Assembly: GCF_964204865.1 (NCBI RefSeq)
Contig: NC_135257.1
Span: 21,948,001-22,012,000 of the forward strand
DNA length: 64,000 nucleotides
From: Styela clava
Lineage: Eukaryota
Reading direction: 5' to 3'
The notes below the pieces were generated by a model. That model did no database searches. It had not been told where the DNA came from and saw only the letters and a program-made list of their open reading frames with translations. Within the stretch, counting starts at the first letter, position 1, and each line of letters begins with the position of its first letter. Below, piece by piece: positions 19,765-53,152 of this stretch. The translations under genes and the position numbers were made by a program.

Positions 19765-22700
19765 ATGAAAATCTCAATCGTTTTTATCTTAATTTACGTC
19801 ATCGACGCATCCTGGTGTCAAGATGAAACAGTGTTTCACTGCTCTCCCAAGCCTGGTTGCCAGATCGCACAATGTGATCCGGTTGCTGTAGGTTGGGACA
19901 GACCAGGCTTCAACATTAATGAACATATGCACGACAAAGAATTTCCGATTACATGCAAATCGAAGAAAACGACAAAGTCCGGAAATAATGGAGACTTGCT
20001 TCCTATCATATCTAGAAATATCTTAGGCAAGTATTTCTTACTCGTAACAAAGTCTTGTTGGTCGTTCTTGCAAATATTCTAGACTGCTCAATTAACAAAA
20101 GCGAGGTTGAATCTGCTCCAAATTTTGTATGTGCATTCATCATAGCTCGGATCAGAAGCCTATTGATTATGGATGAGTTATGTCGTATATTTAGCGAGTT
20201 ATTAATTAATTAGTGATGAAAAGATTTGGATTTTTGCAAATCGAGAAAACGATTTTTGCAAAGCGAGAGATACTATGAAGTAAGAGCGGGTGAATCGAAA
20301 CGTCAGTTTCTGTTTTGGGGATCCCCTGACTTTCGATCGATAAGTCTTCGGTCTCCGACCGATATTCTCGTTTTTAAATTATTTCAATTGGAAATAGTCT
20401 TTTCCAATCCCGATATCGGGATTCATGTTTGTAAAATCACGGAATTTCAATGTTTTATCTATAAACGTCAAGACGGTGCCAATATGGGAGGGAATGACGT
20501 CCTGTGACTGTTACAAGGAGACTGGATTGTTTTGTGCATCAGGACCAAGCCGATGATGGTAAAACCACTCCTCTATTTTCATGGTCATGTGACAGCAGTG
20601 AAGAACCGCAGAGCTGACTTAGCGCAGCGCGATCTAGTTTTTTCATCTGGGTCCGGAGTCCCAACTTAGACGGACTTCGTTGTTCATTGCCGATAGCACC
20701 AGGCCTGCCCAAGCGACCAGTAATAAAACGAGAATATCGGTCGGAGACATAAGACTTATCGATCGAAACTGCGGTTTCGATTCATGACTCTATAGTGACA
20801 CCGCGTGTCCCATCACTAATTAAAAAATAACTCGCTAATTATACGACATAATTCATCCAAAATCAATAGGCTTCTGGTCCGAGATATGATGAATTATATG
20901 ACAAAATTTGGAGCAGATTCAACCTCGCCTTCTTGAGATATCGCGTTCATCTAACAGACATACAAAGAGACATACAGACAAATACCTATCAACATACTTA
21001 CCGATCTTAAGATCGATGAGTAATTAGTCAAATATAACAATTCATTAAAAACAAAGAGTGTAAAAAAGGTGACCGAGGTAAACTGTGAGGAAACGTATTT
21101 TTTCAACCTACAACAACGTCAAATCACAGTGTCTGGTGTGTTTTCAAGTAATATTTGCCACGAAAGAGGCCCGCGAGACATCCTCAAAAGTTTTTGCGGA
21201 CCGCCAAGCTCGCAATCTTGACCACCCTGTTACAAACTATCATGGAACGTAAACTCCAATCACCAAAAGTCTGGTTTGATCTGGTATTTATTCGAGCAAC
21301 TGAGAATTTGTCTATATTTTAAATTTATTGTACTTTTTTCACTTAGATATAAATAACATCAAATCAGAATTCAAAGAGTTGGAGAAAAACGTTGATGCAA
21401 AAATGAAAAGCATTCATAGCTTTGATAAAGAAATCTCAAGTTAGTATTAATGATACGATTATTCGTTATCCGAACTTCCTTCTAATGGAGTATTCTCTTA
21501 ACTTGACCAAAGGTGGCATGAAACAGTTTTATAGTTGGAATAAGTTGAATTTTAACGATAAATTTGAAAACTGTTTTGATGCTTAGTTATTATTGCCAAG
21601 ATTGTCAATTTCTAATCATATATACCACGTAGAAATTAGGGAGATACAGAATGAAAATGCATGGCACACTTCCGAAATAGCTGCTTTAAAGCAGAGCCGT
21701 AAAGAACAATCAACTGAAATCAATGAATTGAAGAAAGGTTTGTTTGATATTTTTTAATATGACATTTGATCCAGTAAAATAAGAATTATTTTTCTGTGTG
21801 AAGTCTAAGAAATGGGCACTGGTGTAAACGTGCTTCTATAATATTGACTTGCAAACTTGAAAAATACGCATTGGAGATCGACACTAGCAACAGTACCAAG
21901 CAACACAAAATTTCAAATCTTTATAGGAAATGAAAACAACTTGGATTAGATATCAATCAATAATTTAATTATTGATCTACATGTGAGTTTTTATTAGATC
22001 TGCTCCGACTTGAAACAATGAACAACAAGCTTCTGGAAGAATTGGACAAACAAATGCAAACAAACAATGAGACGAAGAAAGGTAAAATTACGCAAATATA
22101 GCTCAGCAAATGTATCTTAGACAAAATGAAATCATGCCAAGAATTTCACATTATTAAATCATATTTTACAACGGGAATAGAAATTTCCTATTCTCAAGGG
22201 TAATGTTAAAAGTTAAATTTACAGAAACTCAAGTTTACTAAGCTCTATGGCTTGCATACCTTCATGTCTTTATCAACAAAATTAGCATTTTTGTGGGTTC
22301 GAAGCTGCAGTCCGAGTCAAAATTAACAAATTTCGATTGTAAATTTTCCCAACTTTTCAGCCCTGTCCCGAAAAATACAGTAATAATAACTTCATAACTG
22401 TCGTATGAGTATGTCTATAGTTAGCAAGAGTAATTTACTTCTTCCAAAACCTAGCGATTTGTGCTCTAAGAAGAGACACATATTGTGATGTTTGGTGAAA
22501 TTGCATTGTGTAAATTAGATATGTGATAGAGGCAAAAAGTGCATTTTCAACGGTGGCGGGAGAGTTTTTACACTTTTCAAATTTGTAAAACTGCAAACAA
22601 AAATCATTAAATTTTAGAAAACTGCGATCTGAAGATTAGAAATATCTGTTATTATGTTGTGATACGAGCTAAAGAAGATACCAACTACGACAAAGCAGTT

Positions 22701-23677
22701 GATATTTGTAAGAAACGTAACGCAGATGCTGGTTTGATTCGAGATGAAGAATCCTTCAATGCGGTTATAAAATACTTGGGAAAGGGAGACCAGAGGATAT
22801 TGATATGGACAGGAATCCGCATTGATCCAATGGTTGGTATCTCATATGGCTGTTCTATTTATACTCGCGAAAAATAAGAATCTGTTATTAGACGGATGAA
22901 GGGAGGGAAGGCCGCAGATACAATACGGCAACAGAGATTTGGAAATATTATACGAGCGATTTCAAAACGCAACGATGACATTGCTACCAATCCGGACTTT
23001 TTACACATCAGTATAGTTGGACTTGCTGGTTGAAGGAAACCATCAGTCCTGATGATTGTGAAGGAATTATGTGAGCCAAGTGAATTAGGAATCTGTCAAA
23101 AGTCTTGTTTTTTGGTTCATTACTGTAGATTGCGCCTATTACCACGGATGCTTTGAGCACAGGGGGCAGACTTGGTTAAGAGTTCATGCTTTTCACATGT
23201 TACACGTATGTATGACTGATAACAAATATCCTAATCATCGTTTTAATTAATAATAGTTGTGCAGCATGAACATAGAGTTGTAATTGACAAACATTTAAAG
23301 ACTAAATGCATTTGAAACTTCAACACGTCTACAAACGAATATTCAAATCAGACTTTACTTTTTATATTAATTATGAAACCATACGAACATGGAGATAAAC
23401 AGCACTTGAGAGACTAGTGAGAGTTGCATTTGATCAAACATAATCTAATGAAAGTCTTCATCTAATCGTTTTTATTATTTGTTCTCAGACCCGTGACGTC
23501 ACTCCTGCAGATTCCTTCATTAAATGGCTTCCAAGTCTTCCAAATACTGGAATTATTTATAAAGATTACACAAATGTTATTCTCTATGTTGATCTCAAAC
23601 GGAGATTGAAAGGAATGGGTAATGCTCTTCCCACTGGGGAAATGAGTGGAGTTATTTGTGAGATCCAGATCTTATAA
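19765..23677 (+). CDS. Secreted coiled-coil + C-type lectin-like domain protein, copy 1 (~315 aa)
   Basis: Exons 19765-20026 (signal peptide MKISIVFILIYVIDASWC plus 4-Cys module; GC donor), 21347-21439, 21633-21737, 21998-22081, 22618-22832, 23489-23677 splice in frame (948 nt). CTLD hallmarks CxxxxxxxCY, YDKAVDIC, WTGI, terminal GVICE. AATAAA at 23775-23780. Confidence 0.8.
20095..21024. mobile_element. Foldback composite in intron 1: Helentron-associated (DINE-1/HINE-like) element plus inverted partial copy enclosing another IR element
   Basis: ~20100-20220 is the reverse complement of ~20810-20930, and ~20283-20375 of ~20725-20790. The 3' end has a CAGACA/CATACA microsatellite and a terminal stem-loop TTACCGATC-TTAA-GATCGATGAGTAA. 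Confidence 0.6.
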
Positions 23678-24627
23678 ACGTCTTTGTGGTTTTATTCTAA
23701 TCCTTTGGATCTATCATATATAAATCATTGATTCCCAATTTGAAATTGATGTCGAAAACTTTATTGATAGTTTGAATAAAAAAAGTGAGCATTTTATAAC
23801 AGTATAGTTGATCTGTTTACATAGTTGTATCCGTGAAATTGTTCTGTTTAGCCAGTTTGATTACTTTGCATAATGAAAATTTGGTTTTGAAATTCAGAGA
23901 TTCCAATGTTTAATTTACCAAATTTTAGATATTTGGAAATGAAATATATTACGAACTTGCTTTAGCTCACATGTGATATCTTTTTTGTCATTTTTATGTC
24001 TATTTCTCAGAAGAATCCAGATGAGCAAGAATTAGTTTAAATTCATTGAATTGAGATAGCCCATTTAGTTACAAAACAGCTGATAACGTTTCTTTGTACT
24101 TTTGATTTATGAAAAAAAAAAGTATGTTCCTGGGGTGATCAATATACTATTTGCGATCAAGTTTCTAATACAATGGGAAATGCTCCTCCTACACGGGAGT
24201 TTCAAATGAGATCTAATGAACGTCTGCTTGGTTGAGTTTTGTTATTCAGGATCATTTTATCTGTTAGATTATTTTGACTTTGTCGTTCTAACATTCTTGA
24301 ATTATGAAGGTAAATATGAAAAATTTAGAGGCTTTAATTCTTAATTTGCGTAATTTTAGAAATCCAAGAATGGAAAAAAGAACACAGTTGGCAGGGGCTC
24401 AAGATCTTTATAAATGAACGCAAAGTTCAATTTCGCTTAGAGATCAGTTACTTTTGATTTCGAAGGAAGTCTCGTGAGTGTTTTTTAGGTTTTAGCACCA
24501 ATTTTAGGGTTAGCGAGCAGCGTAATTTAGAACAGTTGTAGGATAAATAGAATATTTTTTGAAGATTTTAAAGATTATTTCAGACGAAGCTGGTGTAGAC
24601 AACTGAAACTGTAATATTTTCTGCCAG

Positions 24628-26073
24628 AAATCCGAGAGAATCGTAACAGAATTGTAGAACTATCAAACGAAACAAATGATTTTCGTAATAACACCCTTCA
24701 GCAATCTCGTCAAATTGAAACTCTATTGAAAGAAAAAACAGAACAAAACTCTGTGATCAATGGATTAAAGAAATGTTAGTGACGGTATGTTGTTGTGATT
24801 GATATTTGACATCAAATCCGGTGATTTATGCCGTGTCGAAAAGATTCTGTCTTTTCAAAAAGCAGCTTCAGTGTGGCTTGATGGACACAATTTGGACCTG
24901 TGAATCGTTTTGTTGCTATGTTGATTTTTTCTTGTTATTGTCGTGAAAAAAACAAAATGATTTTTATTTACCTACTGGACCGATTGATTCAAAATGTTCA
25001 GTGGTTAAAGATTGTTGCTATCGGCAAAAGGCTATAACTTTTTGTTATTTTAAATATGTCAGTGTGCTGTAACCCGTTTCCCAAATTGCAGGAACAAATT
25101 CCTTCGGAACAAAACTGTTGCGCAAAGCGTCCCAAATTACTGGAAATTTTTGGTGCAATCAGACACTTTTTTACTCAGAAAAGAAATATAAGCTGAGATA
25201 AAACAGGCAGATTATTGCATAAAATTTATACATTTCGTATCCATTAAATAATGTTGCATCTCTAACAAACCTGTAGGATCGATGACGTGTTCCAGCATCA
25301 TAATGAACTTTCAAACATAGCAGCATGATGCTTTTTTAGATTTGATTGAAGTTCAAGAAAGAAATGATAAGTTGATGGAGGAATTGAATAAACAACAGAA
25401 AACAAATAATGAGATGAAGAATGGTAATAACTGTTATATTAGTTTATAATTTAGGAGCATTGCGTGGCGCAAAATGGCCGTTGGAGTTAAATGTGAAATA
25501 TGATATGAAAATATGATCTATGTCCTATATTACTCTGAATATTGCTATATTCAGCGATATCTCGAATTGAACAAATACTTGTTATAATGGAAAAGCCTCA
25601 GCCTCTTCAAAACAAACCCGAACTGATCACCAGACCAACAACAAAGCCTCAAACGGCATTAATACCAACTCCTTCTCCAGGTGAATGTTTGAGTCTTTCG
25701 ACGAAAATTGAAAATAAAAATAAAGATAGCGTTATAGAATCAGTAGACCCGAGTCATGTTAGATACTTTTCCGACAATGCAATACCGAGCCATGTGAACA
25801 TAAAGATTTTTTTACAGCACATGAGAGGCGAGTGAGGGTTAACCCAACGATAATCTTCATCAAATCCTTTTATTTTTTTGTTCTCAGACCCGTGATGTCA
25901 ATCCTGCAGATTCAATCATAAAATGGAGTCCAAGTTCTCTATTCACCGGAATTAATTATAAAGATAACACAAATGTTTATCTTTATATTTATTCAAACCC
26001 GATATATGAAGGAATGGTGAACGCTGATCTTCACACAAGGCTTGCTGGGGTTATTTGTGAGATCAATATTTAA
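24628..26073 (+). pseudogene. Lectin copy 2, broken (no leader exon, first CTLD exon missing)
   Basis: Exons 24628-24774, 25340-25423, 25555-25680 (Pro/Thr) and 25888-26073 (last CTLD exon TRDVNPADS...GVICEINI*). The phase-1 donor at 25680 cannot join the phase-0 last exon in frame. A further last-exon remnant (MGNAPPTREF) lies at ~24170-24220. Confidence 0.7.
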
Positions 26074-26730: not shown

Positions 26731-27791
26731 AATTTAGAACAGTTGTAGGATAAATAGAATATTTTTTGAAGATTTTAAAGATTATTTCAGACGAAGCTGG
26801 TGTAGAAAACTAAAACTGTAATATTTTCTGCCAGAAATCCGAGAGAATCGTAACAGAATTGTAGAACTATCAAACGAAACAAATGATTTTCGTAATAACA
26901 CCCTTCAGCAATCTCGTCAAATTGAAACTCTATTGAAAGAAAACACAGAACGAAACTCTGTGATCAATGGATTGAAGAAAGGTTAGTGACGGTATGTTGT
27001 TGTGATTGATATTTGACATCAAATCCGGTGATTTATGCCGTGTCGAAAAGATTCTGTCTTTTCAAAAAGCAGCTTCATTGTGGCTTGATGGACACAATTT
27101 GGACCTGTGAATCGTTTTGTTGCTATGTTGATTTTTTCTTGTTATTGTCGTGAAAAAAACAAAATGATTTTTATTTACCTACTGGACCGATTGATTCAAA
27201 ATGTTCAGTGGTTAAAGATTGTTGCTATCGGCAAAAGGCTATAACTTTTTGTTATTTTAAATATGTCAGTGTGCTGTATAGAACCCGTTTCCCAAATTGC
27301 AGGAACAAATTCCTTCGGAACACAACTGTTGCGCAAAGCGTCCCAAATTACTGGAAATTTTTGGTGCAATCAGACACTTTTTTACTCAGAAAAGAAATAT
27401 AAGCTGAGATAAAACAGGCAGATTATTGCATAAAATTTATACATTTCGTATCCATTAAATAATGTTGCATCTCTAACAAACCTGTAGGATCGATGACGTG
27501 TTCCAGCATCATAATGAACTTTCAAACATAGCAGCATGATGCTTTTTTAGATTTGATTGAAGTTCAAGAAAGAAATGATAAGTTGATGGAGGAATTGAAT
27601 GAACAACAGAAAACAAATAATGAGATGAAGAATGGTAATAACTGTTATATTAGTTTATAATTTAGGAGCATTGCGTGGCGCAAAATGGCCGTTGGAGGTA
27701 AATATGAAATATGATATGAAAATATGATCTATGTCCTATATTAATCTGAATATTGCTATATTCAGCGATATCTCGAATTGAACAAATACTT
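26731..27791 (+). repeat. Near-identical 1.06-kb direct duplication of 24524-25580 (coiled-coil exons 26835-26981, 27551-27634; Pro/Thr exon truncated)
   Basis: Direct comparison shows only a few substitutions and one small indel. Confidence 0.9.
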
Positions 27792-27986
27792 TTTATCTCT
27801 AAAATTAAAAGAACCCCGATATTAGTTGATAAATGGCGCGACAACTCTTTCAATTGTCATGGTGCATTTCATCTATTCGTCTGGATCACCAGACATTGTA
27901 TAATCGTGTTACTTTGTAGACGTTTGTTTATGATCAATGTTTAATATGTATTGTTGCTTTGTGCCAATGTTAGCAACGAAACAAGG

Positions 27987-28033
27987 TGTCAAAAGTGGGA
28001 TTCGAACCCACGCCTCCATTCAGAGACCAGAAC
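27987..28033 (-). pseudogene. 3' half of tRNA-Leu (CAA-type), truncated
   Basis: Minus strand GTTCTGGTCTCTGAATGGAGGCGTGGGTTCGAATCCCACTTTTGACA = anticodon-stem 3' side, long variable arm, T arm and acceptor strand of eukaryotic tRNA-Leu. 5' half absent. Confidence 0.75.
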
Positions 28034-28437
28034 TTTACCTATCAGAGTTTATGAAAAGTTACTTTCAAATTTTCTGTAGCTTTAGGTTATTCCTTCCAGA
28101 TATCTGTTCAGAAAACAGAAAATTTATTTATTTTTCATCAGAAAATCGCGACTCTAGCAAAATCAAAGAACAATCTGCAAGATACGCAAATGTTTTTTTA
28201 AATTACGACAGCCGCAGCCATTTGAAACTTTTCCATTTCATGTTACTATTGACTGACTGTTTGGGTGATGAAACTACTGATGCTACAACCACTAAAATTA
28301 GATTAAGCCATTCGAATGTTATTGTAAACTACCATGAATCGTAAACGCCAATCACCAAAAGTCTGATTAAATCTGGTATTCATTCGAGAAACTGAAAATA
28401 TATCAAAATGTCAAATTTATTTTACTTTATTTCTCAG

Positions 28438-31059
28438 ACATCAGTAACATCAAATCAGAATTCAAATGGTTGGAAGAAAACGTTGATGAAAAAATGAAAA
28501 GCATTCATAGCTTTGAGAAAGCAATTTCAAGTTCGTAATATTGATACGATTATTCGTTATCCGAAGTTTCTTCAGTGTTTCTAACTTGACCAAACTTTGC
28601 ATAAGTACGTTTGATAACTAAAGGAGGTGGAATTTAAAAAAAATCTACTTTGAAATCTTGCTTTAAGGTATTACTGCCATGATTATTACTTTTAACTGTA
28701 TATGTCACGCAGTAATTTGTGAAATACAGAATGAAAATGCGGAGCAATTTGCCGAAATAGCTGACCTAAAACAGAGCCGTAAAGAACAATCAGCTGAAAT
28801 CGTTGACCTAAAGCAGAGCCGTAAAGAACAATCAGCTGAAATCAGGGAATTGAAGAAAGGTGTGTGTGGTTTATTTTAATCTAGTGAAATAGGAACTCTT
28901 TTTCTGTATGAAGTCTAGAAAATGGACGCTATTGAAAACATGCTTCTATGATTTTGACATTGAAATTGAAAAATCCGCATTGGAGACCAACACTTAGCAC
29001 AATACCATGTCACACAAAATTCCAAATATGTACAACGAACGAAAACGAGTTGAATTAGAAAAATGAATAACAATGAGTAGACTCGGCAATTCACATGCAT
29101 CCAGTGTTTTATGTAATATTTCTTTCTTTAGATTAGTCCGACTTGAAACGATGAACAACGAGCTACTGAAAGAATTGAACAAACAAAAGCAAACAAACAA
29201 TGAGATGAAGAAATGTAAAATTGCGCAAATATACCTCAGCTGATGAAATAAAATCATACTAATAATTTCAAATTTTTAATTCATAGATTTACAACAAAAT
29301 GGAGTACCATATGTACGTGAAAATTAGTACAGATAGATCTTAAAGACTTTTTGCTGTAATGCTGGAAATAGACTCTAACTTATGTATATTCTTCTATTCA
29401 GCAATGGAGCGGATTGAAGAAAAACTCTCTGCAACGGAGAAGCCTCGACAGGTTCAATCTGGAAACCAACAGATACCGACGACAACAACCAAAACTACAT
29501 TGAAACCGACTCCTTCCCCAGGTAAGCAATTATAATCAGAGGCGCTGTGAAGATCTTATTCAGGAGTTTGGAGTCGAACTTGGTTTCACCGGAGTCGAGA
29601 CTTGGGTAACATTTTTAAGCTTCCGGATTTCCCCGAAATTCGGGATTAGAAAATTCATTATTTCAATGGCAATAGTGAAAAGTCTAATTTTACAGAAACT
29701 CAAGTTATCAAGTTTACTTACCGTTGTTAACTTGACTATGCCCATGTCTTTCAACTCAAAGTCAAATTTTATTTGACGCTGCACTCGATTGTGAAGTTTC
29801 CTACCTGCACATCCCTGTTCAGAATACCACACTAATAACAACTTCATAACTGTCGTAAGAGTTTGTTTATAGTTAGCAAGAGTAAGATACTTTCTCTAAC
29901 ACCTAGCGATCTGTGTTCTAAGAAGATGTCTAACCAGACACCTATTGAAGTGTAATTTGCAATGTGTAAATTAGATATGGGAACCAATTATGGAGACAGA
30001 AAGTCCACGTTGATCGGTGCGGGCAAAATTTTTATTATGATCAATAATAACACTGTTTGAGTATGTAAAACTGCAAATGAAATTTCCTACATTTCAGAAA
30101 ACTGCAAATTGAAGATTAGAAATATCTGTTATATTTTCGTGATACAAAGAGTCAACTACGACAAAGCAGTTGATATTTGCAAGAAACGTAACGCAGATGT
30201 TGGTTTGATTCGAGATGAAGAATCTTACAATGCGATTATGGATTACCTGAGAAAGAATATTCTAAAGAGAAGGCCGTGGATCCACATATGGACTGGAATC
30301 CACTTTGATCCAATGGTTATTGTCATATGCCTGTTCTATTTATACTTTCAAAATACAATGATATGCTATTAGATGGGTAAAATGAAGGCAAATGCAATAC
30401 AACAACAGATATTTGAAAGTATCACACTAGCGATCTTAAAAGGCAACGATAACATTGTTACCAATCCGAGATATTTTATACATTAGAATAGTTGGACTTG
30501 CTGATTGAAGGAAACCATCTGTCCTGATGATTGTGATGGAAATATGTATGTCAAGTGTATAAGGAATCTGCTAAATGCTTGGTTTCTTCTTTTTCATTAC
30601 TGTAGTTTGCGCTCATAACACATCAGATCCTTTGAGTACAGGGGTCACTGTTTGAGGGTCCGTACTTTTGAAATGTAATACGTATGTACGAGTGATAACG
30701 AATATCTTAATCAGTGTTTAATTTTCTAAGAATTGTGCTGTTCCTAACAAGTTAATACCCAGCCACATGAACCTAAAGTTTTTTTCACAGCATATAAGAG
30801 ACTATTAAGAATTACAGTTGATCATGAATAATCCAACGATAATCTTCATCTAATAATTTTTACTGTTTGTTTTCAGACTCGTGAAGTCACACCTGCAGAT
30901 TCCTTTATTAAATGGCGTCAAGGTTCTCCACTCACGGGAATTCATTATAAAGATTCCACAAATGTTTATCTCCATATTTGGCACATGTTTGGATTACAAG
31001 GGATGGACAATGCTCCTACCTTTAAGCATCATGGAGTTATTTGTGAGATCCAGATCTAA
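28438..31059 (+). CDS. Lectin copy 3, body intact but lacking its own signal-peptide exon (pseudogene or alternative 3' cassette)
   Basis: Exons 28438-28530, 28713-28859, 29137-29214 (in frame only from the second AG), 29402-29521, 30098-30315, 30877-31059. AATAAA at 31134-31139. No MKISIV exon between 23.7 kb and 28.4 kb. Confidence 0.65.
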
Positions 31060-31535: not shown

Positions 31536-32276
31536 ATAGGAGGGATGGGGGAGGTAGGGCATTAGGTCGGGGATAGGAAGTCTGGAGGCGATAGGGCAGT
31601 TGGTGGAGGAAAGGGAGGCTGAGGGAGATAGGGCAGTGGGTGGAAGGCAGATAGGGCAGTGGGTGGAGGAAAGGGAGGCTGAGGGAGATAGGAAAGTGTG
31701 TCGAAGACAGATAGGGCAGTGGGTGGAGGAAAGGGAGGCTGGGGAGATAGGAAAGTGTGTCGAAGACAGATAGGGCAGTGGGTAGAGGACATGGAGGCTG
31801 AGGGAGATAGGGCCGTGGGTGGAGAATAGGAAGGCAAAGGGCAGTGGTTCGGGAATATGAAGGACGGGAGAGATAGGGCGGTAGGTCGGGGATAATAGGG
31901 CTAAGGAAGTAAGGAGCAGTGGGTCTAGGATGTGAAGGCTGAAGGAGATAGAGCAGTAGGTTGTAACTGAGAAGGATGACAGGTATAGGGCAGTGAGCAG
32001 AAGATATGGAGGAGATAAGGCAGTGAGTTAAAGATAGGAGAGCTTAGGGAGTTAGGGTAGTGCGTCGATGATAGGAAGCCTAAGGGAGATAAGGCAGTGG
32101 GTCGAAATCGGAAGAATGAAGGAGATAGGGACGTAAATCGGAAGGACTTGGAAGATAGGGTAGATTATAGAAGATAGTAAGGTTGAAAGAGATAGAGCAG
32201 TGAGTACAAGATATGAAAGCTGAGGGAGATAGGGCAGTGAGTCAAAGACACGAACACTGATGGAGATAGGGCAGAA
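31536..32276 (+). repeat. Purine-rich minisatellite, ~35-37-bp unit GGAGATAGGGCAGTGGGTGGAGGAAAGGGAGGCTGAG
   Basis: About 20 degenerate tandem units with extreme G/A strand bias. Confidence 0.9.
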
Positions 32277-32940
32277 AGAAACACACGCGTGGAGTTGATA
32301 GCAAAGAACGCATTGTTCGCTACTAATTAATTTTCGTATGTAGTTGGAAATAAATTACGTGCACGACTAGTAATAATTAAATATATCGTATAAAACTATA
32401 TTTTTCATACATTTGCCTATTCGGGAGTTACATGCCTTGTTTATTTCAATATTCGATCTCATCATATGATGATAATTTGGGCGCTCCAGAAGTATGTGCA
32501 CCATGATGGCGGTGGACACCGGAATGTCGCATGTGTACCAGGTTAGAGACAGCCATAATTTTATTTCAATTTTCCTTAATTTAGTTCTAGTGCGAGTTCG
32601 GTGATTAGCCAAGTGACTCCCGTAATAATTGTACTTAAAATTATGGCCTAAACCTAACCTGGTACACATACGACGTTCCGGTGTCCGCCATCTTGGTGCA
32701 CATACTTCTGGAGTACCATAATTTGTGCATGCTAATATAATATCGAGATTGGCTGTTCATATCATTACTATTACAAACTGACCGCCAATAGAAGTCATGT
32801 GTCATCTTAAATATATCTTGGCAATTCGATTTATTTCTTGTATATACGTATTCGGCTATATCTGCTTTTGCAATGCAATAACTCGGACTTGAGAGGTGAT
32901 TGTAAACGAAAACGATTTTTTGACAGCCCTGCCTAGTTTT

Positions 32941-40732: not shown

Positions 40733-43700
40733 ATCTGTGTGTGACATGGCCCAAATACCGTTAACATCTGAAAATTTGTTTGTGAGCTCTTGTAGTGTGG
40801 TGAATTCTGGTTTGACTTCCTGTGTACCTGCATCATGTGTATCTAAGCCAAGTTTAAGGTGTTGTGAAATTCCAATGTCATGTGTGGGTGATAACAGACA
40901 ATTGCAGAGCAATGCAATTTACACTGGGGCTGGAACGAACCACAGTGAAATATTAACGAAATTTCCAACTTCATTCAATACTATTCCATTGCATACGACT
41001 AGTTCGGCTGTTAATATGAACCCTACATTACCAACACTAATAGATAATCCTGGCAGAATTGAAAATGCAGAGGCAATGCACTCAGTGAATATTGGCTCAA
41101 TTCGAAAGCCTATTGTGGGCAGTCAACCAAGTAATGCAAATGCACAGAATGACAATATTTCGAATCAACAAGCAGCCAACCCTCAAGTTATATATGTGCC
41201 TCAAACTTTAGGTTTGCCACCATCTGAACCCCCTGTATTTTGTGGTAATGCAGGTGAATATAGGGATTTCATTGATATTTTTGAAACCGTAATTGGTAGC
41301 AGATTACAAAATCCAAAGCACAAACTAGTTTATCTTCTTCAATATACAAAAGGCCCTGCTCGTGCTTTGGTTAAGGGATGCCAGCACAGAACAGATAGCT
41401 ATGATGAAGCTATCCGATTACTTGAAGAAACTTATGGTCAGAAATTTCAAATTGGCGAATCCTGCATTAATTCCATAGCAAATGGTCCTCGACTGAATTT
41501 GAGTAACAAAGAATCATTAACTGTGTATTCAGCAGAAATCATGTCATGCAAAAATACGTTGATAGGGGTTGAATATAAAAATGTTGCCCTTATGACCATA
41601 GAAAAAATAGCTTTAAGAATGCCGCCTGAATGGAGATCTGGGTGGTTATCAAAGATGGACAATGTACTACAAATAAAGAAAAAAGACCTAACAATAGAGG
41701 ATCTTGCTGATTACGTCCGTAAGAAAACTAGAGAAGTATGCAATGTTCCCTCTATCGAATTTAATACTTCAAAACAAATTATTCCCACAAGAGGCTCGAG
41801 GCCATACAAATCCTCATTTGCAACTACAGTTCATAATAATAGACCTGTACGCAGATGTGTAAAATGTGATGGAGATCATTACTTAAATCAATGCGATGAA
41901 TTTCGAGGCATGACGTATGATAAGAGATTGGAGTTTGTAAAAAAGCAAAAGTTGTGTTTTTCATGTTTATTATCTGGGCATTGGGTCAGGGAATGTAAAC
42001 GAAACAACCCTTGCAAAAATGCAAACTGCAGAAGAAAACACACAACACTTCTTCATCCTCCGGATAAGGAACCAATAAAAGTCCCTACATCAAGTAGTCA
42101 TGAAAGTACTACACAAACACATAATGATTATAGGACACAGATGTCTGAAACCAAATTTAATGCATTCCTAAATGCCTCTGACGAACAAAAGGTTTTGCTC
42201 AATGTTGTACCTGTTAAGGTACGCATAGCTGGTAGAAGAAATGCTGTTATAACCAATGCATTCTTTGACAATGGATCGACTTGCTCTTTTATAAGCAATT
42301 CGCTGATGAATAAATTAAAGGTCAATGGACCAGTTACAAATCTGAACATTCGTACGATAAATAATACTGTGGAACACAAGCAATGCACTGTTATAAAGAA
42401 CCTCGAATTAGCAGATTTCGAGGAGTCAAAATATGTAAGGTTAAATCCCTTGTTTTCAAACGATCAAATTGGTGTTGATCAAACAGATATCCCTACACAA
42501 AGTGATCTTGATCAATTTAAAGAATTTAATGGTATTGTGATACCCAAAGTAGAATGTGATGTGGAGCTCTTGATTGGCAAAGATAATCTTGGTTTGCATA
42601 AACCATTGGAAGTGATTTATGGCCCAAACAATTATTTTGCATTGAAGACAATTGCTGGATGGATGGTTAACTGCCCTGCGAAAAATGGAAATACCAAAAA
42701 TTCTACATATTTCACCAAATCTCAACTAAATCCTTTGTGCCAAATGTGTGCAGATGTTGTTGATTCTGCAATTAATGAAAAAGATGAAGTTTCACCAATT
42801 CAACAAGTTTTTCTTGACAAAGTTAGTAAGTCAATTAAGCTCAGAACTGATGGACATTACGAAATAGGTTTACCATTGAAGAATCCTGATGTTAAGTTGC
42901 ACTCAAATAAATATCAAGTTTTGCAGCGAGCAGAATCATTAAAGCGTCGTCTTCACAAGGAACCGGAATTTTATGCAGAATACAAGGATTTTGTTGCAAA
43001 TATGATCACAATGGGTTATGCTGAAGAAGTTCTGGATGCCAATGAAGAAGAAGGAAGGACTTGGTACCTCAGTCATCATGGAGTTCGTCATCCAGAGAAG
43101 AAAACATTGAGGGTTGTATTTGACTGCTCTGCAAAATCAGAAGGAATTTCATTTAATGACATCCTGTTACAGGGGCCGGATTTAACAAATAATTTAGTTG
43201 GAGTCTTGTCACGCTTTCGCAAAAATATTGTAGCTGTTCAAGGGGATATACGGTCCATGTTTCATCAGGTAAAGGTGAAAGAATGTGATAGAAATTTCCT
43301 CCGTTTCTTCTGGTGGGAAAATGGTGACATCACTTTACCCATGAAAATTTATAGAATGGCGGTTTTTCTCTTTGGAACTGTGTGCTCTCCCAGTTGTTGC
43401 AACTTTGCTTTGAGACAAACTGCAATAGACAACAAAGATGATTTTGAACAAAGTGTGATTGATGCAATTAATGATTCATTTTATGTTGATGATTTTTGTG
43501 ATTCTAAACCGGATGCTGCTAGTGCCCTCCAACATATAAAGAGTGTTACTGAAATTGCTGCTAAAGGTGGTTTTGAAGTGACGAAATGGGTGAGCAATGA
43601 CCGTGAAGTATTGGCCTCAATTCCAGAAGCTCACCGATCGAAGGAAGCAAAGCGTTTGGATATCTCTATAGATGAATTGCCTGTTGAGCGAGCTCTTGGC

Positions 43701-46094
43701 ATGATATGGAACGCAAATGAAGATACAATAAGTTTCAGTACTAAATACACTGAACGACCAGCTACCAGACGGGGTATGCTGGGTGTTGTGAACTCAATAT
43801 TTGACCCTCTTGGCATTGGCCAGCCGGTCATTCAACCTATGAAGGTCCTTATGCAAGGATTGTGCAGGAAGAAGCTGGGATGGGACGATTCAATTCCTCC
43901 AGAGTGTGAACAGGAATGGCTAAAGTGGATATCAGAATTATCCAAGTTAGAAGATTTTAATATTCCAAGATGTTTTTTACCGCCTGATTTTGGAAAAACC
44001 ACAGAAATACAAATTCATCACTTTTCTGATGCATCCGAAAAGTCTTATGGTGCTGTTTCATATATACGTTTAAAAAATTCGTCTGGACAAATTCATTGCT
44101 CAATACTGTGTGGTAAAAGTCGATTAGTACCTCTCAAAGGCTCAACGATTCCCAGGTTAGAGTTATGTGCAGCAACAATATCTGCGCGAAATGAAAAATT
44201 CTTCCGTAAAGAACTCAAGCTCCCAATTGATGCATCTATATTTTGGACGGATAGCACCACCGTATTACGATATTTGGCAAATACTGATAAAGTTCTAAAA
44301 ACTTTTGTTGCAAACAGGGTGAATGTTATCAAAGAAGTTTCTGATGTGAATCAATGGTACTATGTGCCTTCCAAATTAAACCCTGCAGATGTTGCATCTA
44401 GGGGCATGTCTGCTGATCAATTTTTGAACTACCCACAATGGAAATTTGGACCAGAATTTTTATGGAAAAATCAGGAAGAATGGCCTAAACAACCAGATTT
44501 CCTGCATACAATGAATGATAAGAATTTGGAATTTAAAAAGCAGAGTCCAGATTCACAGATGTGTTTTGCTCTAAATACAGATATACCTACTGTATTAGAC
44601 CAAGTTACTAATAAATATTCAAATTGGTTCAAAATGAAGAAGATTGTAGCATGGGTTTTACGTTACAAGCGAGCACTGCTTTCCAAGGTCAGAGAGGATG
44701 TTTCTTGCAATTTGGGGAGTGAAAATAATAAATTTTTATCTGTGGATGAAGTGAACTTGGCAGAATTGGAAATAATCAAAAATGAACAATTCAAATATTA
44801 TTCAAAGGAAATTAATGTATTGACCAAAGGTGAACAATTGCCAAAATCAAGTTCATTGTGTAAATTGCAGCCTATTATGAAAGAAGGTCTTCTCCGTGTT
44901 GGTGGAAGAATTGGAGCATCGAGTCTTCAATATGACGCAAAACATCCTATAATAATTCCAAACAAGAGTTCTATTGCTAATTTGATTATTGAACATACTC
45001 ATCAAGTTACAGGCCATAGTGGAAGAGAATATGTAATTGCTGAATTACATCAAAAGTTCTGGATTATAAAAGCAAATGCAATGACACGAAAGATTCTCAA
45101 CAACTGTATATCTTGTCGCAAGAGACAGCGGGCACCTGAATCTCAATTGATGGCCGACCTCCCAGAAGACCGATTAATACCAGACAAGCCACCTTTCTCT
45201 TTTGTCGCTCTTGACTGTTTCGGTCCATTTCTTGTTCGTCAAGGACGAAGCGAAGTAAAAAGATATGGTGTTATTTTCACTTGCCTAGTGACCCGTGCAG
45301 TGCATGTTGAAATTGCACATAGCCTAGATACAAGTGCCTTTATAATGTCTCTTAGAAGATTCATTTCAAGAAGAGGACAAGTAGTTGAAATAAGATCAGA
45401 TAACGGAACAAATTTTGTCTCTGGAGAACAAGAATTGAGAAATTCTATCAAGACTTGGAATCAGAATCAAATACATAGGTTTTTGCTGCAAAAGAACATC
45501 AAGTGGCTGTTTCAAACTCCAGCGGCTTCTCACCATGGTGGAGTTTTTGAGAGACAAATCAGAACAATTAGAAAAATTTTCAACGCTATTTGCAGAGAAC
45601 AAAAATTAACTGATGAAAGCTTAATTACACTTATGTGTGAATGTGAATCCATAGTGAATGGAAGGCCAATAACAACTGTATCCAATGATCCAAAAGATTT
45701 GACTCCTTTGAGCCCGAACAATTTGTTGTTGTTGAAAGAAGAACCGATACTTCCTCCAGGAGTATTTGATGCTAAAGACTTGTATGTTCGTAAGAGATGG
45801 AAACAAGTACAATACTTAGCTGATGTGTTTTGGAAAAGATGAAGACGAGAATACCTTCCTCTGCTTCAAACAAGACAAAAATGGAACAAAGTTCAAAGGA
45901 ATTTAGCTAAGAATGATGTTGTACTTGTGATGGATGAAAATTTGCCAAGAAATGCATGGCTGTTGGGTAGAATCATTGGAACGTTTCCCGACAACAAAGG
46001 CCGTGTACGTTCTGCTACGGTGCAAACCAACCATTCAATCTTAGATAGGCCCATTACTAAATTAATTCTTCTGTGTGCAAGTGACTCTGATTGA
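40674..46094 (+). CDS. BEL/Pao Gag-Pol polyprotein, interrupted by a premature TGA at 45840-45842
   Basis: DUF1759-like Gag (PPVFCGNAGEYRDF), three Cys/His knuckles, protease FFDNGST, RT YVDD, RNase H HFSDASEKSYG, integrase HHCC and D-D-E (LDCFGP, SDNGTNF, FERQIR). The frame continues past WKR* as RREYLPLLQTRQKW...RPITKLILL (DUF5641-like) to TGA at 46092-46094. Confidence 0.95.
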
Positions 46095-46242
46095 GTTGTG
46101 TGCAAAACCCATTTCGTTTGACTCTAGTTGAATTGTGTGTATGTGAGATCAATTCCGTTTTTAAATTTTGTGATTTTGTTTTTGAGTGTGTAGAAATTTC
46201 AAATTTGTGGATGGCAAATTCTCAATTTCTAAGGGGCCGGGA

Positions 46243-46849
46243 TGAAACTGCCTCTTTCGCTTCATTATATTTTTTGTTGTTTACCACTGGAGGCGCTGGT
46301 GGTACATACGTTCACAGATTTTAGTGATTGTGACATCATAATACCCCGTGCGCGTTTGCTGCGCGCGCTGCTTCAGTACCTTGATTCGACCTTCTCAGGA
46401 CTGTGGGATTTGTGGTGCAAGGTTTTCGTTGTCTGGAGATTTGTAGTTCCAAGGTTTTAATTGTATTTTCATATATTTAGATTTAATAACATTAACTTAA
46501 TTTCAATAACTGTCCCAATCAACTGTCGATTGTTTTGTAAGCTGAAAGCTACACTGTCAAAAAACCGTACTGCCGTACTTCCCGTACACGTATTGATGTA
46601 CTCTCGTACTGACGTACTCTCGTATCCACGTATTGTCGTAATCACGTACTGTTGTATTATCATACCTATAACATCGTACCGACGTATCTTCATACACCTG
46701 TACTTTCCTGACAATAAACGACATCAACTTGTACTGTTATACGCGTCTTTTTGCATTGGAGTGACAAAATCAGTTTACTAAAACAGATCGACCATCTAAG
46801 AAATACACCTGGTGTGGGCGCTAAAGGCACTCCAAATTTGGCGTCTACA
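46243..46849 (+). repeat. 3' LTR (607 bp)
   Basis: Direct repeat of the 5' LTR, preceded by the PPT and followed by the TSD. Confidence 0.97.
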
Positions 46850-48217: not shown

Positions 48218-51200
48218 TGAGCGCGGATGCCATGGAGCATTGCGGACGTATAGTTTGCAGTGGCCTAAAGCCAGCCATGGATGTGGTCTATAAATATGTG
48301 CATGGTTGAAGTGAATAATAATTTTACTTTTTCAAGTTGCGAGGACACATAAATTGTCCCGGGGAAACTGAGAACCAGTGACCCCCTATAGGAGGTGAAC
48401 ACCCCCGTCTTCTGAAATTTGAAAAGGTGTGGCACCAAACTTCAATTCTTGGGTAAATAAAAATGGGGGCTCCCGAAGTATGCGAACCAAGATGGCGGAC
48501 ATCGGAATGTAATATGTGTACTAGGTTAGGGTTAGGCCATAATTTTAGGTATAAATACTACGGGAGGCTCTTGGCTAGTCTTCGAACTGATAATAGGACT
48601 AAAATAAGGAAAATTGAAAAAAAATTATGGCCTAACCCTAACCTGTTACCCATGTTACGTTCCGATGTCCGCCATCTTGGTTCGCATACTTCGGGAGCAC
48701 CGTTTTATCACTAATAGCAAAATATTTACTACCCCCTAAATTTCGATCAACAATTAAAATATAAAGCTGGGAAACGTACTAATAAGAACTAACTAGAAGA
48801 AAATACGATCCAGTCAACACACTTACTTTGAACCGCGAGTTTCAGAACAACGAGTTACGAGTGGCGTCATTTATTAGAGTAGCAACCTCGTGGAAGTTTG
48901 AATGAGATTTGCTGCATTTCATGGTTACGTATTGCTTTGGAATAAACACAAACAAATTTTATTCATTCAGTTATAACGTAAATATCCTGAAACCTCGAGA
49001 TGAAAATCTCAATTGTTTTTATCTTAATCTGCGTTATCACGACATCCTGGTGTATGAACGCTACTGAATCAAGTAATACTGGCAACTGGCTTCCTGTCGT
49101 AACTCAAAATAGTTTAGGTAAGTAAGAACTATTGAACATCATTTTAATCGTCGCTCCAGAAGTGTATGTACTAATATGGGGGGGTAACTAGTATCATTCG
49201 CCTTCAAGTTGTATATATAGATTGAAATCCATGGGCATGGTGTATATTCACATGGCTAACACAGACAGTCCCGAAACTCGTAATAGAGCTAAAATAAGAG
49301 AAATCGGAAAAAAATTATAACCTAACATTAACTTAGTACACACGCTACGGGAGTTGTTGTTTTCAAACAGTTTGAATAGTTTATAATACGTATATACAAT
49401 TTGTATAGTCGGCTAATGCTAAGTTAAGAATATAATAATGCTACAGCTAAATATGGAGCAAAAATTTTTTTTTCCTAAAACATCAAAATTTCTTTCTTAG
49501 GGAGAATTACCATCTGGTTTATTAGAAATTTAGATTCAAATTTGTTGGAGAGTTTATATCTGTTCTTGAGTAAAACGATATTCATTAGAGATTTACAAGA
49601 TTACTTCCAGGGGAAACATTCATTTCTCTGGGAGGAGGAATTATAGGAATCTGAAAATGTCATATTTTCCACCAGAAATTCGCGAGAATCGTAACAAGAT
49701 CGCAAAACAAACAAACGAAATAAAAGATTTCCGTAATAGAACTCTTCAGCAATCTCGTCAAATTGACAATCTACTGGAGGAAAACAAAGAACAAAACTCT
49801 GAAATCAGGGACTTGAGGAAAGGTTAGTAGTGCGTTGTCAAAGATTGACCGTTAGTTAATTATTGTTTCAATAAAATCTAGGACTTTTACAATTTAAATC
49901 TGTGAGAATTGGAAGTTGACCTTGATATAAACATGCATACGTTTGGAAATATGGTTTAAAATAAGTATTTACGATACTATTAGGATATTTTCATAACTAT
50001 ATTCATCATACAGAAAGTCGCGAGTTACGGAATAAACTTGTGCTGCAATCAGCCGAAATCGTTGACCTAAAGAAGAGCCGTGAAGAACAGTCAAGAGAAA
50101 TTGGGGAATTGAAGAACGGTTTGTGTGACATTTTTACTACGGGATTTAACCTAGTGGTATGGAAATTGTTGTATGATATCTCGGAAAAATGGGTTATATT
50201 GTAAACATGCTCCTATTATTTCGATATTCGCACTTGAAAAAAAAAATGTGCAGTATGGAACTTATACTGAGTGCAGTAATAGGTCACACAAAATTCCAAA
50301 TCAGCATAACGAATGAACACAACTTGAATTAGAAAAGTGAAGATCAATAAGTAGGATTGGTAAATCACTGCACCCGTTGTTCTATGTGATCTTACTTTTG
50401 ATACAAAATAATTTGCAAAAAATTAGATATTTTATTCAAATTTAGAGTATAGTCGAGTTACAAGATCAACTGCAAACAAATTGGCTTTTTTGAGGCTGAA
50501 TTGGACGACATTTTGTTTCTGGTAATCCTGGAAATTGACGCTAACTTATGTATATTCTTCTATTCAGCAATGGATCGGATTGAAGAAAAACTCTCTGCAA
50601 CGGAGAAGCCTCAACAGGTTCAATCTGGAAACCAGCAGAGACCAACGACAACAACCAAAACAACATTGAAACCGACACCTTCCCCAGGTAAATTACATAG
50701 TCACATATCCAGAAGTAGGCCTATATGTACCAATATAGAGGTAACTAGTTTTGTTTGGCTACGTTACATCAAGTTGTGTAAAGGGACTGAAACCTATGTG
50801 CAAGGGTTATACTCACTTGGCTAACACAGACAATCCTCGGACTCGTAATACAACTAAAGTCGCAGAGCCGCAGTCGGACTCAAGTTTGTTTCAACCCGGA
50901 GTCGGGAAAAGATTGTATTTCCCACGACTGCACAGCTCTATCCAGGAGACCAAACTGACAACTTTATGAGTAACAGTATATATATAATTGGCGAAAGTAA
51001 TTTAATTTTCCCTAAACGTCGCGATTTGTGCTTTAAGAAGATGTCTGGCCAGACATCTACGAATGTGGAATTTGCCATGAGCAAAATTAGACTTGGGAAC
51101 CAAGTATAGAGGCAAAAGTACATATTCATCGGGTCTGTCAAACTTGTTGTTGTGTTCAATAATAAAACTTTTCAAATTTATAAATCTGTAAGCTAAATTT

Positions 51201-53152
51201 TTTACATTTCAGAGAACTGCAAATTAAAGATTGAAAATATGTGTTATTTTGCTGTGATTCACGATCCATGGGATGTCGACTACGACACAGCAATTGATAT
51301 TTGTAAGAAACGTAACGCAGATGTTGGTTTGATTCGAGATGAAGAATCTTTCAATGCGATTATGGATTACTTGGTCAAGAATACTCCCATGGGATTTCGG
51401 GGGATCATTATATGGACAAGAATCCGCTTTGATCCAATGGTTAGTGCCATACGTATGTTCTATGTATAATCGAGCAATTTTTAAATGCAACGATGACATT
51501 GTTACCCATCCGGGACTTTTTACACATCAATATAGTTTGACTTGCTGATGATTGTGATGGAATTAGGTGAGTTAAGTGAATTAGGAATCTGTTAAATATC
51601 TGGTTTCTTTTTGTTAATTACTGTAGATTGCGCTATTTAGCACATCAGATTCTTTGAGTAGAGTGGGCACTGTAGTTCCAGGCCTTTTAAATGACATACG
51701 CCTGTCCGAGTTATAACGAACATCCTAATCAGCGTTTAATTTTATCAATCCCATGCAGCATGTGAGATAGTAGTGATAGTTACAGTGGATCAAGCATAAT
51801 TCAATGATAATTTTCATTCAAACATTTTCATTGTTTGTTCTCAGACCCGTGACGTTACTCCTGCAGATTCATTCATTAAATGGTCAAGTCCATTTGACTC
51901 TTTTCCACGGATTGGAATTAAAAATAAAGATCGCACAAATGTTTATCTCCATGTTGATTCGAAACTGATATGGCACTCAATGGGTAATGCTTCTCCTACC
52001 TTGAAGCTAAACGGAGTTATTTGTGAGATTCAGATCTAATGAAACGTCTGCCTGGTTGTATTTTGTTCCGCTTGATCATATATTTTAAACCATTAATTCC
52101 TAATTTGAAATTGATGTCGAAAATTTATTGAGAGTTTGATTATCAGGATTTTTTGTTTTGCAGATCTAACTACTTTGCATTCTAATGGTATAGATGTGAA
52201 ATTTAGAGATTCAATGTTTAATTCGGGTAATTTTAGAAATTCTGAAACAAAAATATTATGTACTTGACTCATTGATTCAAAATAAATCCGACTTCCATAA
52301 CAGGTCTCTTGCATCCTAGCCATCTAGACAGGGGTACTAGGTTTTCGAACGACGGGCCAAACATTTCGTCCACCTAGACTGGCTGACTGACATGTAAATG
52401 TGACATGAAAGTGAACATTTTATGAACAATATAGTGGAGAGCAATAAGCCTCGTGCCAAAACTAAATTTTATTGCAATCTCAATCCCTTGAGCTATTTTT
52501 TAGCTGGTTGTGGAATCATCAGACAGGTCAGATTGAATTACCCAAAGGATCATATTTGGGCCGCGGGCCGCAGTTTGCCCATGTTAGGTCTTGATGCATT
52601 CTGATATGAATATGTAGGTAAGGTAAGTTGTCCTCCAGCCCTCACAACGTTTCTACATGAAAATCGGTTGAAACGACGAATATATTCAGATATTAGTCAA
52701 ATCCTTAAACCTTTGGTTTCTACGATCACGTGCGTGGTATGGAAGCATTGTTTATATCTAAAGAGGAAAAAAGATACGACGGCTCTTATGGCGAACCAAG
52801 GCCTTCCTTCAGTTACCACTCCATATCGGGAAGGGAAATTGTTAATCGATTAGTTGTTGCTGATGAATGAACTTCATTAAGGATTATTCGCTATTTGATT
52901 AAGGCGACCCCAGAGCAGAGCCAGGGTTAGGCTCTCGATAGTGAAAAAGACTTGTTGGATACACCGCCGCTGTGTCGTTGATTCCTGCTACCTCGTCGTG
53001 TACCATAATTTTTTTCCTATTTTCCTTATTTTAATTCTTCTACGATTTCCCACACAATCTGTGTTAGCAAAGTCAATATAACCCTGCCTATCGTAATCTT
53101 TCCTTCACACAACTTGATGTAAAGTAGACGCACAAAATTAGTTACCTGCATA
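48218..53152 (+). repeat. ~5-kb tandem segmental duplicate of 34943-47944 (minus the LTR element)
   Basis: Collinear high identity across introns, MITEs and 3' flank; last CTLD exon identical by eye. Confidence 0.92.
49000..52039 (+). CDS. Secreted coiled-coil + Pro/Thr stalk + CTLD protein, copy 5 (~303 aa)
   Basis: Exons 49000-49117, 49676-49822, 50014-50118, 50568-50687, 51213-51439, 51845-52039; GT-AG, in frame (912 nt). Confidence 0.85.

Follow-up and report, generated by a model that had tools for sequence, protein, structure and literature searches.

How broad can recognition be in tunicates, the sister group of vertebrates, in which we know of no antibody-type adaptive immunity? This question is raised by a 64,000-nucleotide stretch of the Styela clava genome (RefSeq assembly GCF_964204865.1, contig NC_135257.1, positions 21,948,001 to 22,012,000 of the forward strand). 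This whole stretch is referred to here as the window, and coordinates given without a contig are positions within it. A previous analysis made from the nucleotide sequence alone (the sequence-only reading) described a tandem family of secreted proteins with a C-type lectin-like domain (CTLD), in which almost invariant framework blocks alternate with short, radically different patches, and proposed that the family evolves by birth and death under diversifying selection. The reading that we favor, and regard as rather probable, is that the locus encodes an inherited set of coiled-coil-stalked proteins with a lectin fold, where the framework is constrained, five surface loops change fast, and the set constitutes a candidate recognition repertoire. 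The scaffold is stable across the genes, and most differences between them fall in the loops that make up the ligand site of C-type lectins. A cluster of about 2.4 Mb and about 80 genes, of which the window would be one edge, is a concrete and testable candidate for broad recognition. Genes, fold and cluster are all real; the candidate role in recognition is read from the architecture.

A motif scan of the window in all six frames recovered every framework block and variable patch quoted in the sequence-only reading, and only on the + strand. The block YD[KT]A[VI]DICKKRNAD.GLIRDEES was found at positions 22686, 30157, 38319 and 51281, and TR.V.PADS.IKW, KD.TNV and GVICEI at 23504, 25903, 30892, 38898 and 51860. 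The patches that follow KW are LPSLPNT, SPSSLFT, RQGSPLT and SSPFDSFPRI; those that follow TNV are ILYVDLKRRLKG, YLYIYSNPIYEG, YLHIWHMFGLQG and YLHVDSKLIWHS; those that follow NA are LPTGEMS, DLHTRLA, PTFKHH and SPTLKLN; and those that precede WT are GKGDQRILI, RKNILKRRPWIHI and VKYTPMGFRGMII. Self-comparison and tblastn showed four multi-exon genes (A, B, C and D) and one fragment (A'), all on the + strand, extending from the ATG of the gene A signal-peptide exon at position 19765 to the gene D stop codon at 52037-52039. The four genes stand in an array, in agreement with the description of a tandem family, and both head exons are present in only these four copies; the fifth copy is an isolated last exon (25888-26073) within a partial gene.

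From the N-terminus, the genes encode a signal peptide and a Cys-rich segment, followed by a stalk from phase-1 coiled-coil exons, in some genes a Thr/Pro linker, and a C-terminal head spread over two exons. In gene C, the junctions that join the signal peptide, the first and second coils, the Thr/Pro linker and head exon 1 are all in phase 1, and that between head exons 1 and 2 is in phase 0. The stalk length differs among family members (208 to 584 amino acids in those read) because the coiled-coil exons are phase-1 symmetric. A Thr/Pro linker stands between stalk and head in genes C and D, and gene A has no such exon. The signal-peptide exon opens three of the four genes (tblastn); its donor is GC in gene A (20026-20028) and GT in gene C. 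The window sequence was searched exon by exon, and the steps that needed a whole protein used database models instead of joined window exons. The database model of gene A, P0011, matches the last five exons of the gene at 95-100% (tblastn) and has a different first exon, without a signal peptide, leaving the GC-donor exon unused. The gene C model corresponds to P0088 (331 amino acids, Styela clava LOC144425819), with 100% identity over the two head exons and one coiled-coil exon; elsewhere the local alignments overrun the splice junctions. A complete gene would yield a secreted protein with a signal peptide, a short Cys-rich N-terminus, a variable coiled-coil stalk, in some cases a mucin-like Thr/Pro linker, and a CTLD. 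The stalk that precedes the head is a long predicted helix (residues 2-95 of the gene A protein, pLDDT mostly >90 in the AlphaFold2 model), in line with the helical neck that had been proposed, and together with the Cys-rich end it would form oligomers.

The assignment of the head to the CTLD fold was not obtained from single exons. When the window was searched exon by exon with Pfam Lectin_C (PF00059, gathering score 22.6 bits), the best match reached 17.2 bits (E=0.0089, gene B head exon 1), and the other six window exons had no Lectin_C match. Single-exon profiles compared with solved structures gave nothing significant (E-selectin at 0.12 and chance matches to alliin lyase), and the fold call therefore rests on full-length database proteins. 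Two of the relatives taken at full length, P0008 at 17.4 bits and P0020 at 18.4 bits, remained below the Lectin_C cut-off, and only the four-domain protein P0001 (37.1 bits) passed it. A profile of 67 family proteins matched the solved structures of PLA2R (4.5e-7), DEC-205 (1.4e-5), SP-A (7.5e-5), mosGCTL-3 (2.7e-4), tetranectin (1.5e-3) and E-selectin. An AlphaFold2 model of the gene A protein, made with 67 family sequences, had a pLDDT of 94.2 and showed the helix at 2-95 followed by the beta-beta-alpha-alpha-beta order of a CTLD. Foldseek comparison of this model with the PDB returned 372 matches at E<=1e-3, the top ones all CTLDs: the best was the neck and carbohydrate-recognition domain (CRD) of CL-K1 (E=2e-6), followed by CD23, Mincle, dectin-2, DCIR, CRD4 of the mannose receptor and SP-A, with target-normalised TM scores of 0.61-0.76 against single-domain chains. 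Both the fold and the profile matches thus bore out the CTLD head.

The profile alignments located the conserved and the missing elements of this domain. The family sequence W-y-P-G-x-P-x fell on WYPGEPN of SP-A, and G-M-x-N on G-x-W-N. Cysteines C0, C0', C1 (in DIC) and C4 (in VIC) are invariant or nearly so, and IWTGI takes the place of WIGL. In the PLA2R alignment, the invariant N of TNV lies at cysteine C2 and a Thr at C3. Since C2 and C3 are absent, the family is a CTLD variant with two of the three disulfides; as modeled, the head is a divergent long-form CTLD with predicted C0-C0' and C1-C4 bonds and no C2-C3 bond. At the EPN/QPD position the window genes have L-P-N, S-L-F, S-P-L and F-P-R. 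The WND position reads x-N-[A/G/V/R/T] in the family (A/G in the window genes), where the Asn alone is invariant. Of the five canonical ligand positions of Ca2+ site 2, only the WND Asn is kept in the family. As most canonical Ca2+ and sugar ligands are absent, binding is probably not the classical Ca2+-dependent binding of sugar.

The distribution of variability over this fold was determined with an entropy profile. Of 95 stored proteins, 67 yielded a single parseable domain, and the profile was built from the 43 of these that share at least 40% identity with gene A. Taken with the secondary structure of the model, the profile showed that variable columns concentrate in five loops, L1 to L5; L1 is at least as variable as the other four. 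Positions L3 to L5 correspond to the classical CTLD ligand face. L4 spans two model strands, E197-203 and E208-214. The sequence-only reading had implied that the variable patches lie on this face, which held for those after KW, TNV and NA, found at the EPN position, the beta3-beta4 hairpin and just past the WND position, respectively. It probably does not hold for the patch before WT, which lies in the alpha2-beta2 loop (L2) and, judging from strand topology, should sit on the far side, probably off the ligand face. By the same topology, L1 should adjoin L5. Three of the five loops would occupy the places where classical C-type lectins bind Ca2+ and sugar. In-frame indels distinguish subgroups in L3 and L4; L4 has the same length in A, B, C and A', and the lengths of L5 in these are within one codon of each other.

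The window would be one edge of a large and recently growing tandem cluster. With head exon 1 of gene C as query, at least 140 places were found in the 377-Mb genome, at least 82 of them at E<=1.3e-10; 78 of the latter are on contig C9, where 76 lie within 2.4 Mb (21.05-23.45 Mb). These copy counts are lower bounds because the genome search scores only the best candidates. Among 1.84 billion cluster representatives, a head exon 1 profile matched only 57 at E<=1e-3, and the 20 that were looked up comprised 16 from Styela clava, 3 Logan or ENA records and 1 chance fungal match. The same head occurs behind other front ends, namely CCP domains (P0012), four heads in a row (P0001) and a Gly-X-Y collagen stretch in P0035, a distant relative formerly named 'pulmonary surfactant-associated protein A-like'. 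All 45 homologues carried the name 'uncharacterized protein ... [Styela clava]' or one like it and lacked a precomputed Pfam domain, and some family members are misnamed golgin-like or Smc-like in databases. A large family can in this way escape domain annotation. In the Styela clava genome paper (PMC7540406), 78 expanded families are mentioned, including 'pulmonary surfactant-associated protein collectin', and 25 MBL genes are counted. Literature searches found no description of this Styela clava cluster or of its loop variability.

Outside the window, several head-exon copies at 22.53-22.73 Mb (- strand) and 23.01-23.20 Mb (+ strand) of contig C9 are identical at the protein level and in opposite orientation, which suggests a recent inverted segmental duplication or else an assembly duplication. 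The introns of the four copies L034 to L037 differ by 0.2-2.5%. Head exon 1 also has more distant relatives, with 35-41% identity, in tandem rows at 12.94-13.03 Mb of contig C6 and 14.86-15.03 Mb of contig C17; scores are nearly identical within each row, and these rows are further arrays of the wider family.

Selection was assessed in both head exons of 23 genes, the four of the window and 19 from other loci, all with AG and GT splice sites and with each exon analysed separately. The last exons of L033 and L040 were excluded from the alignments, and identical sequences were removed before tree building (L037 and L046 from the ct1 set; gene D and L037 from ct2). The codon model was run with our own code, whose likelihood reproduces the IQ-TREE GY+F3X4 value. 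The ratio of non-synonymous to synonymous rates (omega) over whole exons was 0.62 and 0.74. For the framework it was 0.38 in head exon 1 (p=2e-12) and 0.53 in head exon 2 (p=1.6e-4), and pairwise Nei-Gojobori values agreed (0.26-0.54 in the four bins whose framework dS was >=0.05). Purifying selection acts on the framework. Loop L1, a partition picked after its variability was seen, had an omega of 3.0 (p=6e-4). A site test showed 7 of 146 codons with a non-synonymous rate above the synonymous one at p<0.05; five of these are in last-exon loops or at positions aligned to N of EPN and W of WND. They include an L3 site after the Pro (beta>alpha, p=0.014), one hairpin site in L4 (p=0.007) and two sites in L5.

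The pairwise Nei-Gojobori values for the patches could not serve as proof of neutrality and were rejected for that use, as patch dS is inflated (two to three times framework dS) and near saturation. For this reason, intron divergence (K), raw nucleotide counts and the tree-based codon model were added. Raw counts were taken from gap-free columns only, in five non-overlapping gene pairs. Between genes A and C, 24 of 270 nucleotides differ in framework codons, 36 of 78 in the three last-exon loops and 58 of 309 in the intron between the head exons (loops against intron, P=2.5e-6). The excess of the loops over the intron was also found for B-L029 (33/75 vs 101/478, P=6.5e-5), L041-L043 (22/81 vs 148/1477, P=2e-5) and L047-L048 (19/84 vs 75/541, P=0.048), and amounts to about 1.6-2.7-fold at the nucleotide level in these four of the five pairs. 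For genes A, B and C compared with one another, this intron gives K values of 0.22-0.25, from alignments that cover 84-100% of the shorter intron. In the wider intron comparison, from which 219 of 253 pairs were dropped (intron cover <0.6 or <250 sites aligned), 16 pairs with K of 0.08-0.25 had a last-exon loop dN of 2.1-4.4 times K and a framework dN of about 0.3-0.65 times K. The contrast between framework and loops is far beyond chance. The sequence-only reading had named flanking introns as the yardstick for its patches, and the patches diverge much more. These results support a diversification of the loops beyond neutral drift.

The way in which the loops change could be followed in closely related copies. 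Between L041 and L043 (intron K 0.11), the last exon has about five differences over its initial 96 nt, and L4-L5 contains a dense substitution cluster and a 3-nt indel. The second half of the L043 patch (L5) shares 90% identity over 40 nt with an L046-type paralogue, and the closest relative, L041, differs there, which indicates a short gene conversion tract. The 69-nt L4-L5 stretch of gene A and the L4-L5 stretch of genes C/D have no other match in the genome, so that these either diverged in place or lost their donors. Where donor cassettes for the patches were sought, there was one for the L5 of L043 and none for genes A and C/D. Compensated frameshifts were also rejected, since the alignments show clustered substitutions and whole-codon indels with unshifted frames. 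The loops would change by clustered point substitutions, in-frame indels and at least one short conversion tract from a paralogue. Purifying selection keeps the fold-forming framework, and the five surface loops change much faster. Tandem and segmental duplication would add whole genes and truncation would remove them; the array, with its fragments and broken copies, fits the birth-and-death evolution that had been proposed. The family would then act as a germline repertoire of multivalent binding proteins, whose target could be microbial, allogeneic, gametic or the tunic matrix. We advance only tentatively the fuller proposal that some 80 or more oligomeric binders, with ligand-face loops diversified by selection and short-tract conversion and with a binding site that has abandoned the classical Ca2+/sugar mechanism, serve in anticipatory immunity or allorecognition.

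Other results weigh against a selected repertoire. The classical signature of dN/dS>1, expected by the sequence-only reading in the patches it quoted, did not emerge significantly in them: omega was 0.80 in L2, 0.73 in L3, 0.88 in L4 and 1.44 in L5, none significantly different from 1, and 0.95 in L3-L5 pooled (p=0.73). Nei-Gojobori pairwise values for the patches were 0.93-0.99 relative to their own dS, and no codon of the 146 survived Bonferroni correction. Synonymous rates in the codon model are raised in the patches (1.2-1.7 vs 0.77-0.87), so that part of the excess may be non-selective, through conversion, mutation clusters or alignment error. The fifth gene pair, L032-L027, had no loop excess over the intron (P=0.5), the loop/intron ratio was only 1.0-1.6 in 10 pairs with intron K>=0.29, and recent duplicates (K<0.05) had almost no loop change. 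Only 23 of at least 76 copies entered the selection analysis. Within the window there is the fragment A', in which tblastn found neither a signal-peptide exon nor head exon 1. For gene B, tblastn found no signal-peptide exon within the window, and secretion, claimed for the family, stands for the other three genes. Compared with gene C, the first exon of gene D has an in-frame deletion of 28 amino acids that removes the Cys-rich N-terminal stretch after the signal peptide (QDKTVFHCS...ITCKS). Finally, when contigs of three runs guessed to be RNA and of one DNA-like run were placed on positions 19600-25599, the joints listed for the contigs of the RNA-like runs included none that matched a splice of gene A. 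Positive selection is, in sum, only partly demonstrated.

Of the runs that contain the stretch, none is recorded as RNA. The RNA-like runs cover only an intron repeat and two small exon pieces of the gene A region. One piece lies on the signal-peptide exon (81 nt, 5 mismatches); the other lies on conserved framework (96 nt of a 583-nt contig) and is probably from a paralogue, given its 10 mismatches. The first intron of gene A contains a high-copy repeat (20000-21200), where the contigs of each of the four runs lie hundreds to thousands of times deeper than on the flanks and where joints and loose ends are numerous. In the DNA-like run, X1, one contig joins 21740 to 24785, that is, the end of a gene A coil exon to a point just past the coil exon of A', with three other letters between; this may represent a haplotype with a deletion, or else the assembly may have passed from one coiled-coil exon to a similar one.

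Several of these points would follow from relaxed constraint, in which a redundant, fast-duplicating family lets its loops drift and many copies become pseudogenes with no selection for diversity. The loop omega near 1, A' and the signal-peptide-less gene B in the window, and gene A expression not being seen in the contigs of the three RNA-like runs agree with it, as do the stop codons in 7 of 82 head exon 1 copies and the frameshifted (L033) and truncated (L040) last exons among the 27 extracted. Neutral sites cannot outpace introns, yet the loops do so in four of the five pairs, and relaxed constraint alone is therefore insufficient. The framework is strongly constrained, and all 32 first head exons and 25 of the 27 last ones are open with intact splice sites. 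We consider this explanation unlikely.

Somewhat less likely still is that conversion homogenises the framework and introns and the loops keep or import an older divergence, so that the contrast arises mainly as an artefact of dating sequences with mosaic histories, whether or not selection also acts against homogenised loops. The order of divergence between A and C (framework dS 0.13, intron K 0.22, patch dS 0.48) fits such concerted evolution, and so do the raised synonymous rates of the patches and the tract shared by L043 with another paralogue. On the other side, no present donor exists in the genome for the L4-L5 patches of A and C/D, and the L041-L043 differences are clustered in a few codons with no single clean tract. 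The pattern resembles loci with homogenised introns and framework but diverse binding regions, a likeness that would also imply selection on the loops, and the escape of loops from repeated conversion would itself require selection. Although L3 and L4 carry in-frame indels between subgroups and an omega near 1 with high dS is expected from misaligned codons, it is very improbable that the loop indels simply put non-homologous codons together and inflated dN and dS, given that the counts came from gap-free columns, that the loops of A, B, C and A', with L4 and L5 of nearly equal length, differ at 44-51% of nucleotides vs 19-21% in introns, and that the differences cluster in the same way when nucleotides are aligned without constraint.

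The features of the window are collected in Table 1. Genes C and D are near-duplicates (95.7% identity over 3 kb) with an identical head exon 2, and both head exons of gene B are bordered by AG acceptors and GT donors. The 1.06-kb tandem duplicate, which contains one of the family's coiled-coil exons, belongs to the broken region between genes A and B. A Pao/BEL-type retrotransposon lies 55 nt past the stop codon of gene C, and the empty site is kept in gene D. Its long terminal repeats (LTRs) are 607 nt long and 99.8% identical, with TG..CA ends and a 5-nt CCATT target duplication; an open frame of 1722 amino acids has Peptidase_A17, RVT_1 and rve domains, with a 325-amino-acid frame upstream. 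This element is very young. Just downstream of gene B, at 31590-32274, there are imperfect direct repeats, 67% identical and offset by about 180 nt, whose - strand has open frames rich in Pro (PPFPPPTALS units). A repeat some 230-260 nt long, resembling a small inverted-repeat transposon, occurs at 14046-15400, 32476-32730, 48459-48706 and 55912-56173, matching itself in both orientations with 72-99% identity; the pair 15172-15400 and 48473-48701 is 98.7% identical.

Table 1. Genes, exons, loops and other elements of the window, in window positions.
Feature	Position	Strand	Basis or remark
Gene A	19765-23677	+	tblastn of exon peptides and database protein P0011; splice sites read
Gene A signal peptide and Cys-rich N-terminus exon	19765-20026	+	donor GC (AG/GCAAGT)
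Gene A coiled-coil exons, three	21347-21439, 21633-21737, 21998-22081	+	
Gene A head exon 1	22618-22832	+	
Gene A loop L1, beta1-alpha1, RAKEDTN	22665-22685	+	entropy profile; absent from the list of the sequence-only reading
Gene A loop L2, alpha2-beta2, GKGDQRILI (patch before WT)	22779-22805	+	motif scan, entropy profile
Gene A head exon 2	23489-23674, stop 23675-23677	+	
Gene A loop L3, LPSLPNT (patch after KW), at EPN/QPD position	23528-23548	+	profile alignment to SP-A
Gene A patch L4, ILYVDLKRRLKG (after TNV): strand beta3, hairpin turn, beta4 start	23579-23614	+	
Gene A loop L5, LPTGEMS (after NA), beta4-beta5, past WND-equivalent position	23627-23647	+	
Tandem duplicate, 1.06 kb	24524-25585 and 26731-27796		98.4% identity; self-comparison
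Fragment A'	24615-26073	+	tblastn
A' coiled-coil exon	~24615-24773	+	
A' Thr/Pro linker exon	~25542-25691	+	
A' orphan head exon 2	25888-26070 + stop	+	
Gene B	26822-31059	+	tblastn
Gene B possible coiled-coil exon	~26822-26983	+	
Gene B coiled-coil exons	~28706-28861, ~29133-29213	+	
Gene B linker	~29398-29520	+	
Gene B head exon 1	30098-30315	+	
Gene B head exon 2	30877-31056 + stop	+	
Gene C	35801-39077	+	splice sites and phases read
Gene C signal peptide and N-terminus	35801-36002	+	
Gene C coiled-coil exons	36707-36853, 37045-37149	+	
Gene C Thr/Pro linker	37607-37726	+	
Gene C head exon 1	38251-38477	+	
Gene C head exon 2	38883-39074 + stop	+	
Pao/BEL-type LTR retrotransposon	39133-46849	+	LTRs 39133-39739 and 46243-46849
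Gene D	49000-52039	+	tblastn
Gene D signal-peptide exon	49000-49117	+	
Gene D coiled-coil exons	49676-49822, 50014-50118	+	
Gene D linker	50568-50687	+	
Gene D head exon 1	51213-51439	+	
Gene D head exon 2	51845-52036 + stop	+	

The practical value of the cluster lies in its defined genes, loops and sites, which can be taken into expression, population and binding work. Among known systems, proteins of the tetranectin type are likewise secreted and consist of an N-terminal segment, a helical stalk and a C-terminal long-form CTLD with the extra N-terminal Cys pair, without collagen; tetranectin itself was matched by the family profile at only E=1.5e-3. The Styela stalk differs in its modular build from 2-4 or more phase-1 exons and in its much greater length; some genes have a Thr/Pro linker, and the C2-C3 disulfide is absent from the Styela family. 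There are about 80 Styela paralogues with hypervariable loops, in contrast to a few conserved genes of the tetranectin type. Collectins provided the best structural matches of the gene A model, the neck and CRD of CL-K1 and SP-A, as well as one of the profile matches (SP-A, given above), and the modeled gene A protein shares with them an alpha-helical neck before the CRD. Unlike collectins, P0011 (gene A) and P0088 (gene C) have no collagen region, a Gly-X-Y stretch before the same head being found only in the distant relative P0035; the window genes have no EPN/QPD motif and only the Asn of WND, and their exons remain below the Lectin_C cut-off.

A third comparison is offered by the snaclecs of snake venom, NK-cell receptors of the Ly49/KLR type and CTL expansions of invertebrates, in which a conserved CTLD is combined with accelerated change in the long loop and the beta3-beta4 region and with tandem birth-and-death clusters. 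The Styela family likewise has a conserved scaffold, diversified loops and tandem turnover. It differs in being soluble, coiled-coil stalked and confined to one lineage, and in that dN/dS>1 was not demonstrated. The Styela family is a lineage-restricted variant of the theme of coiled coil and CTLD, with diversified loops on the ligand face.

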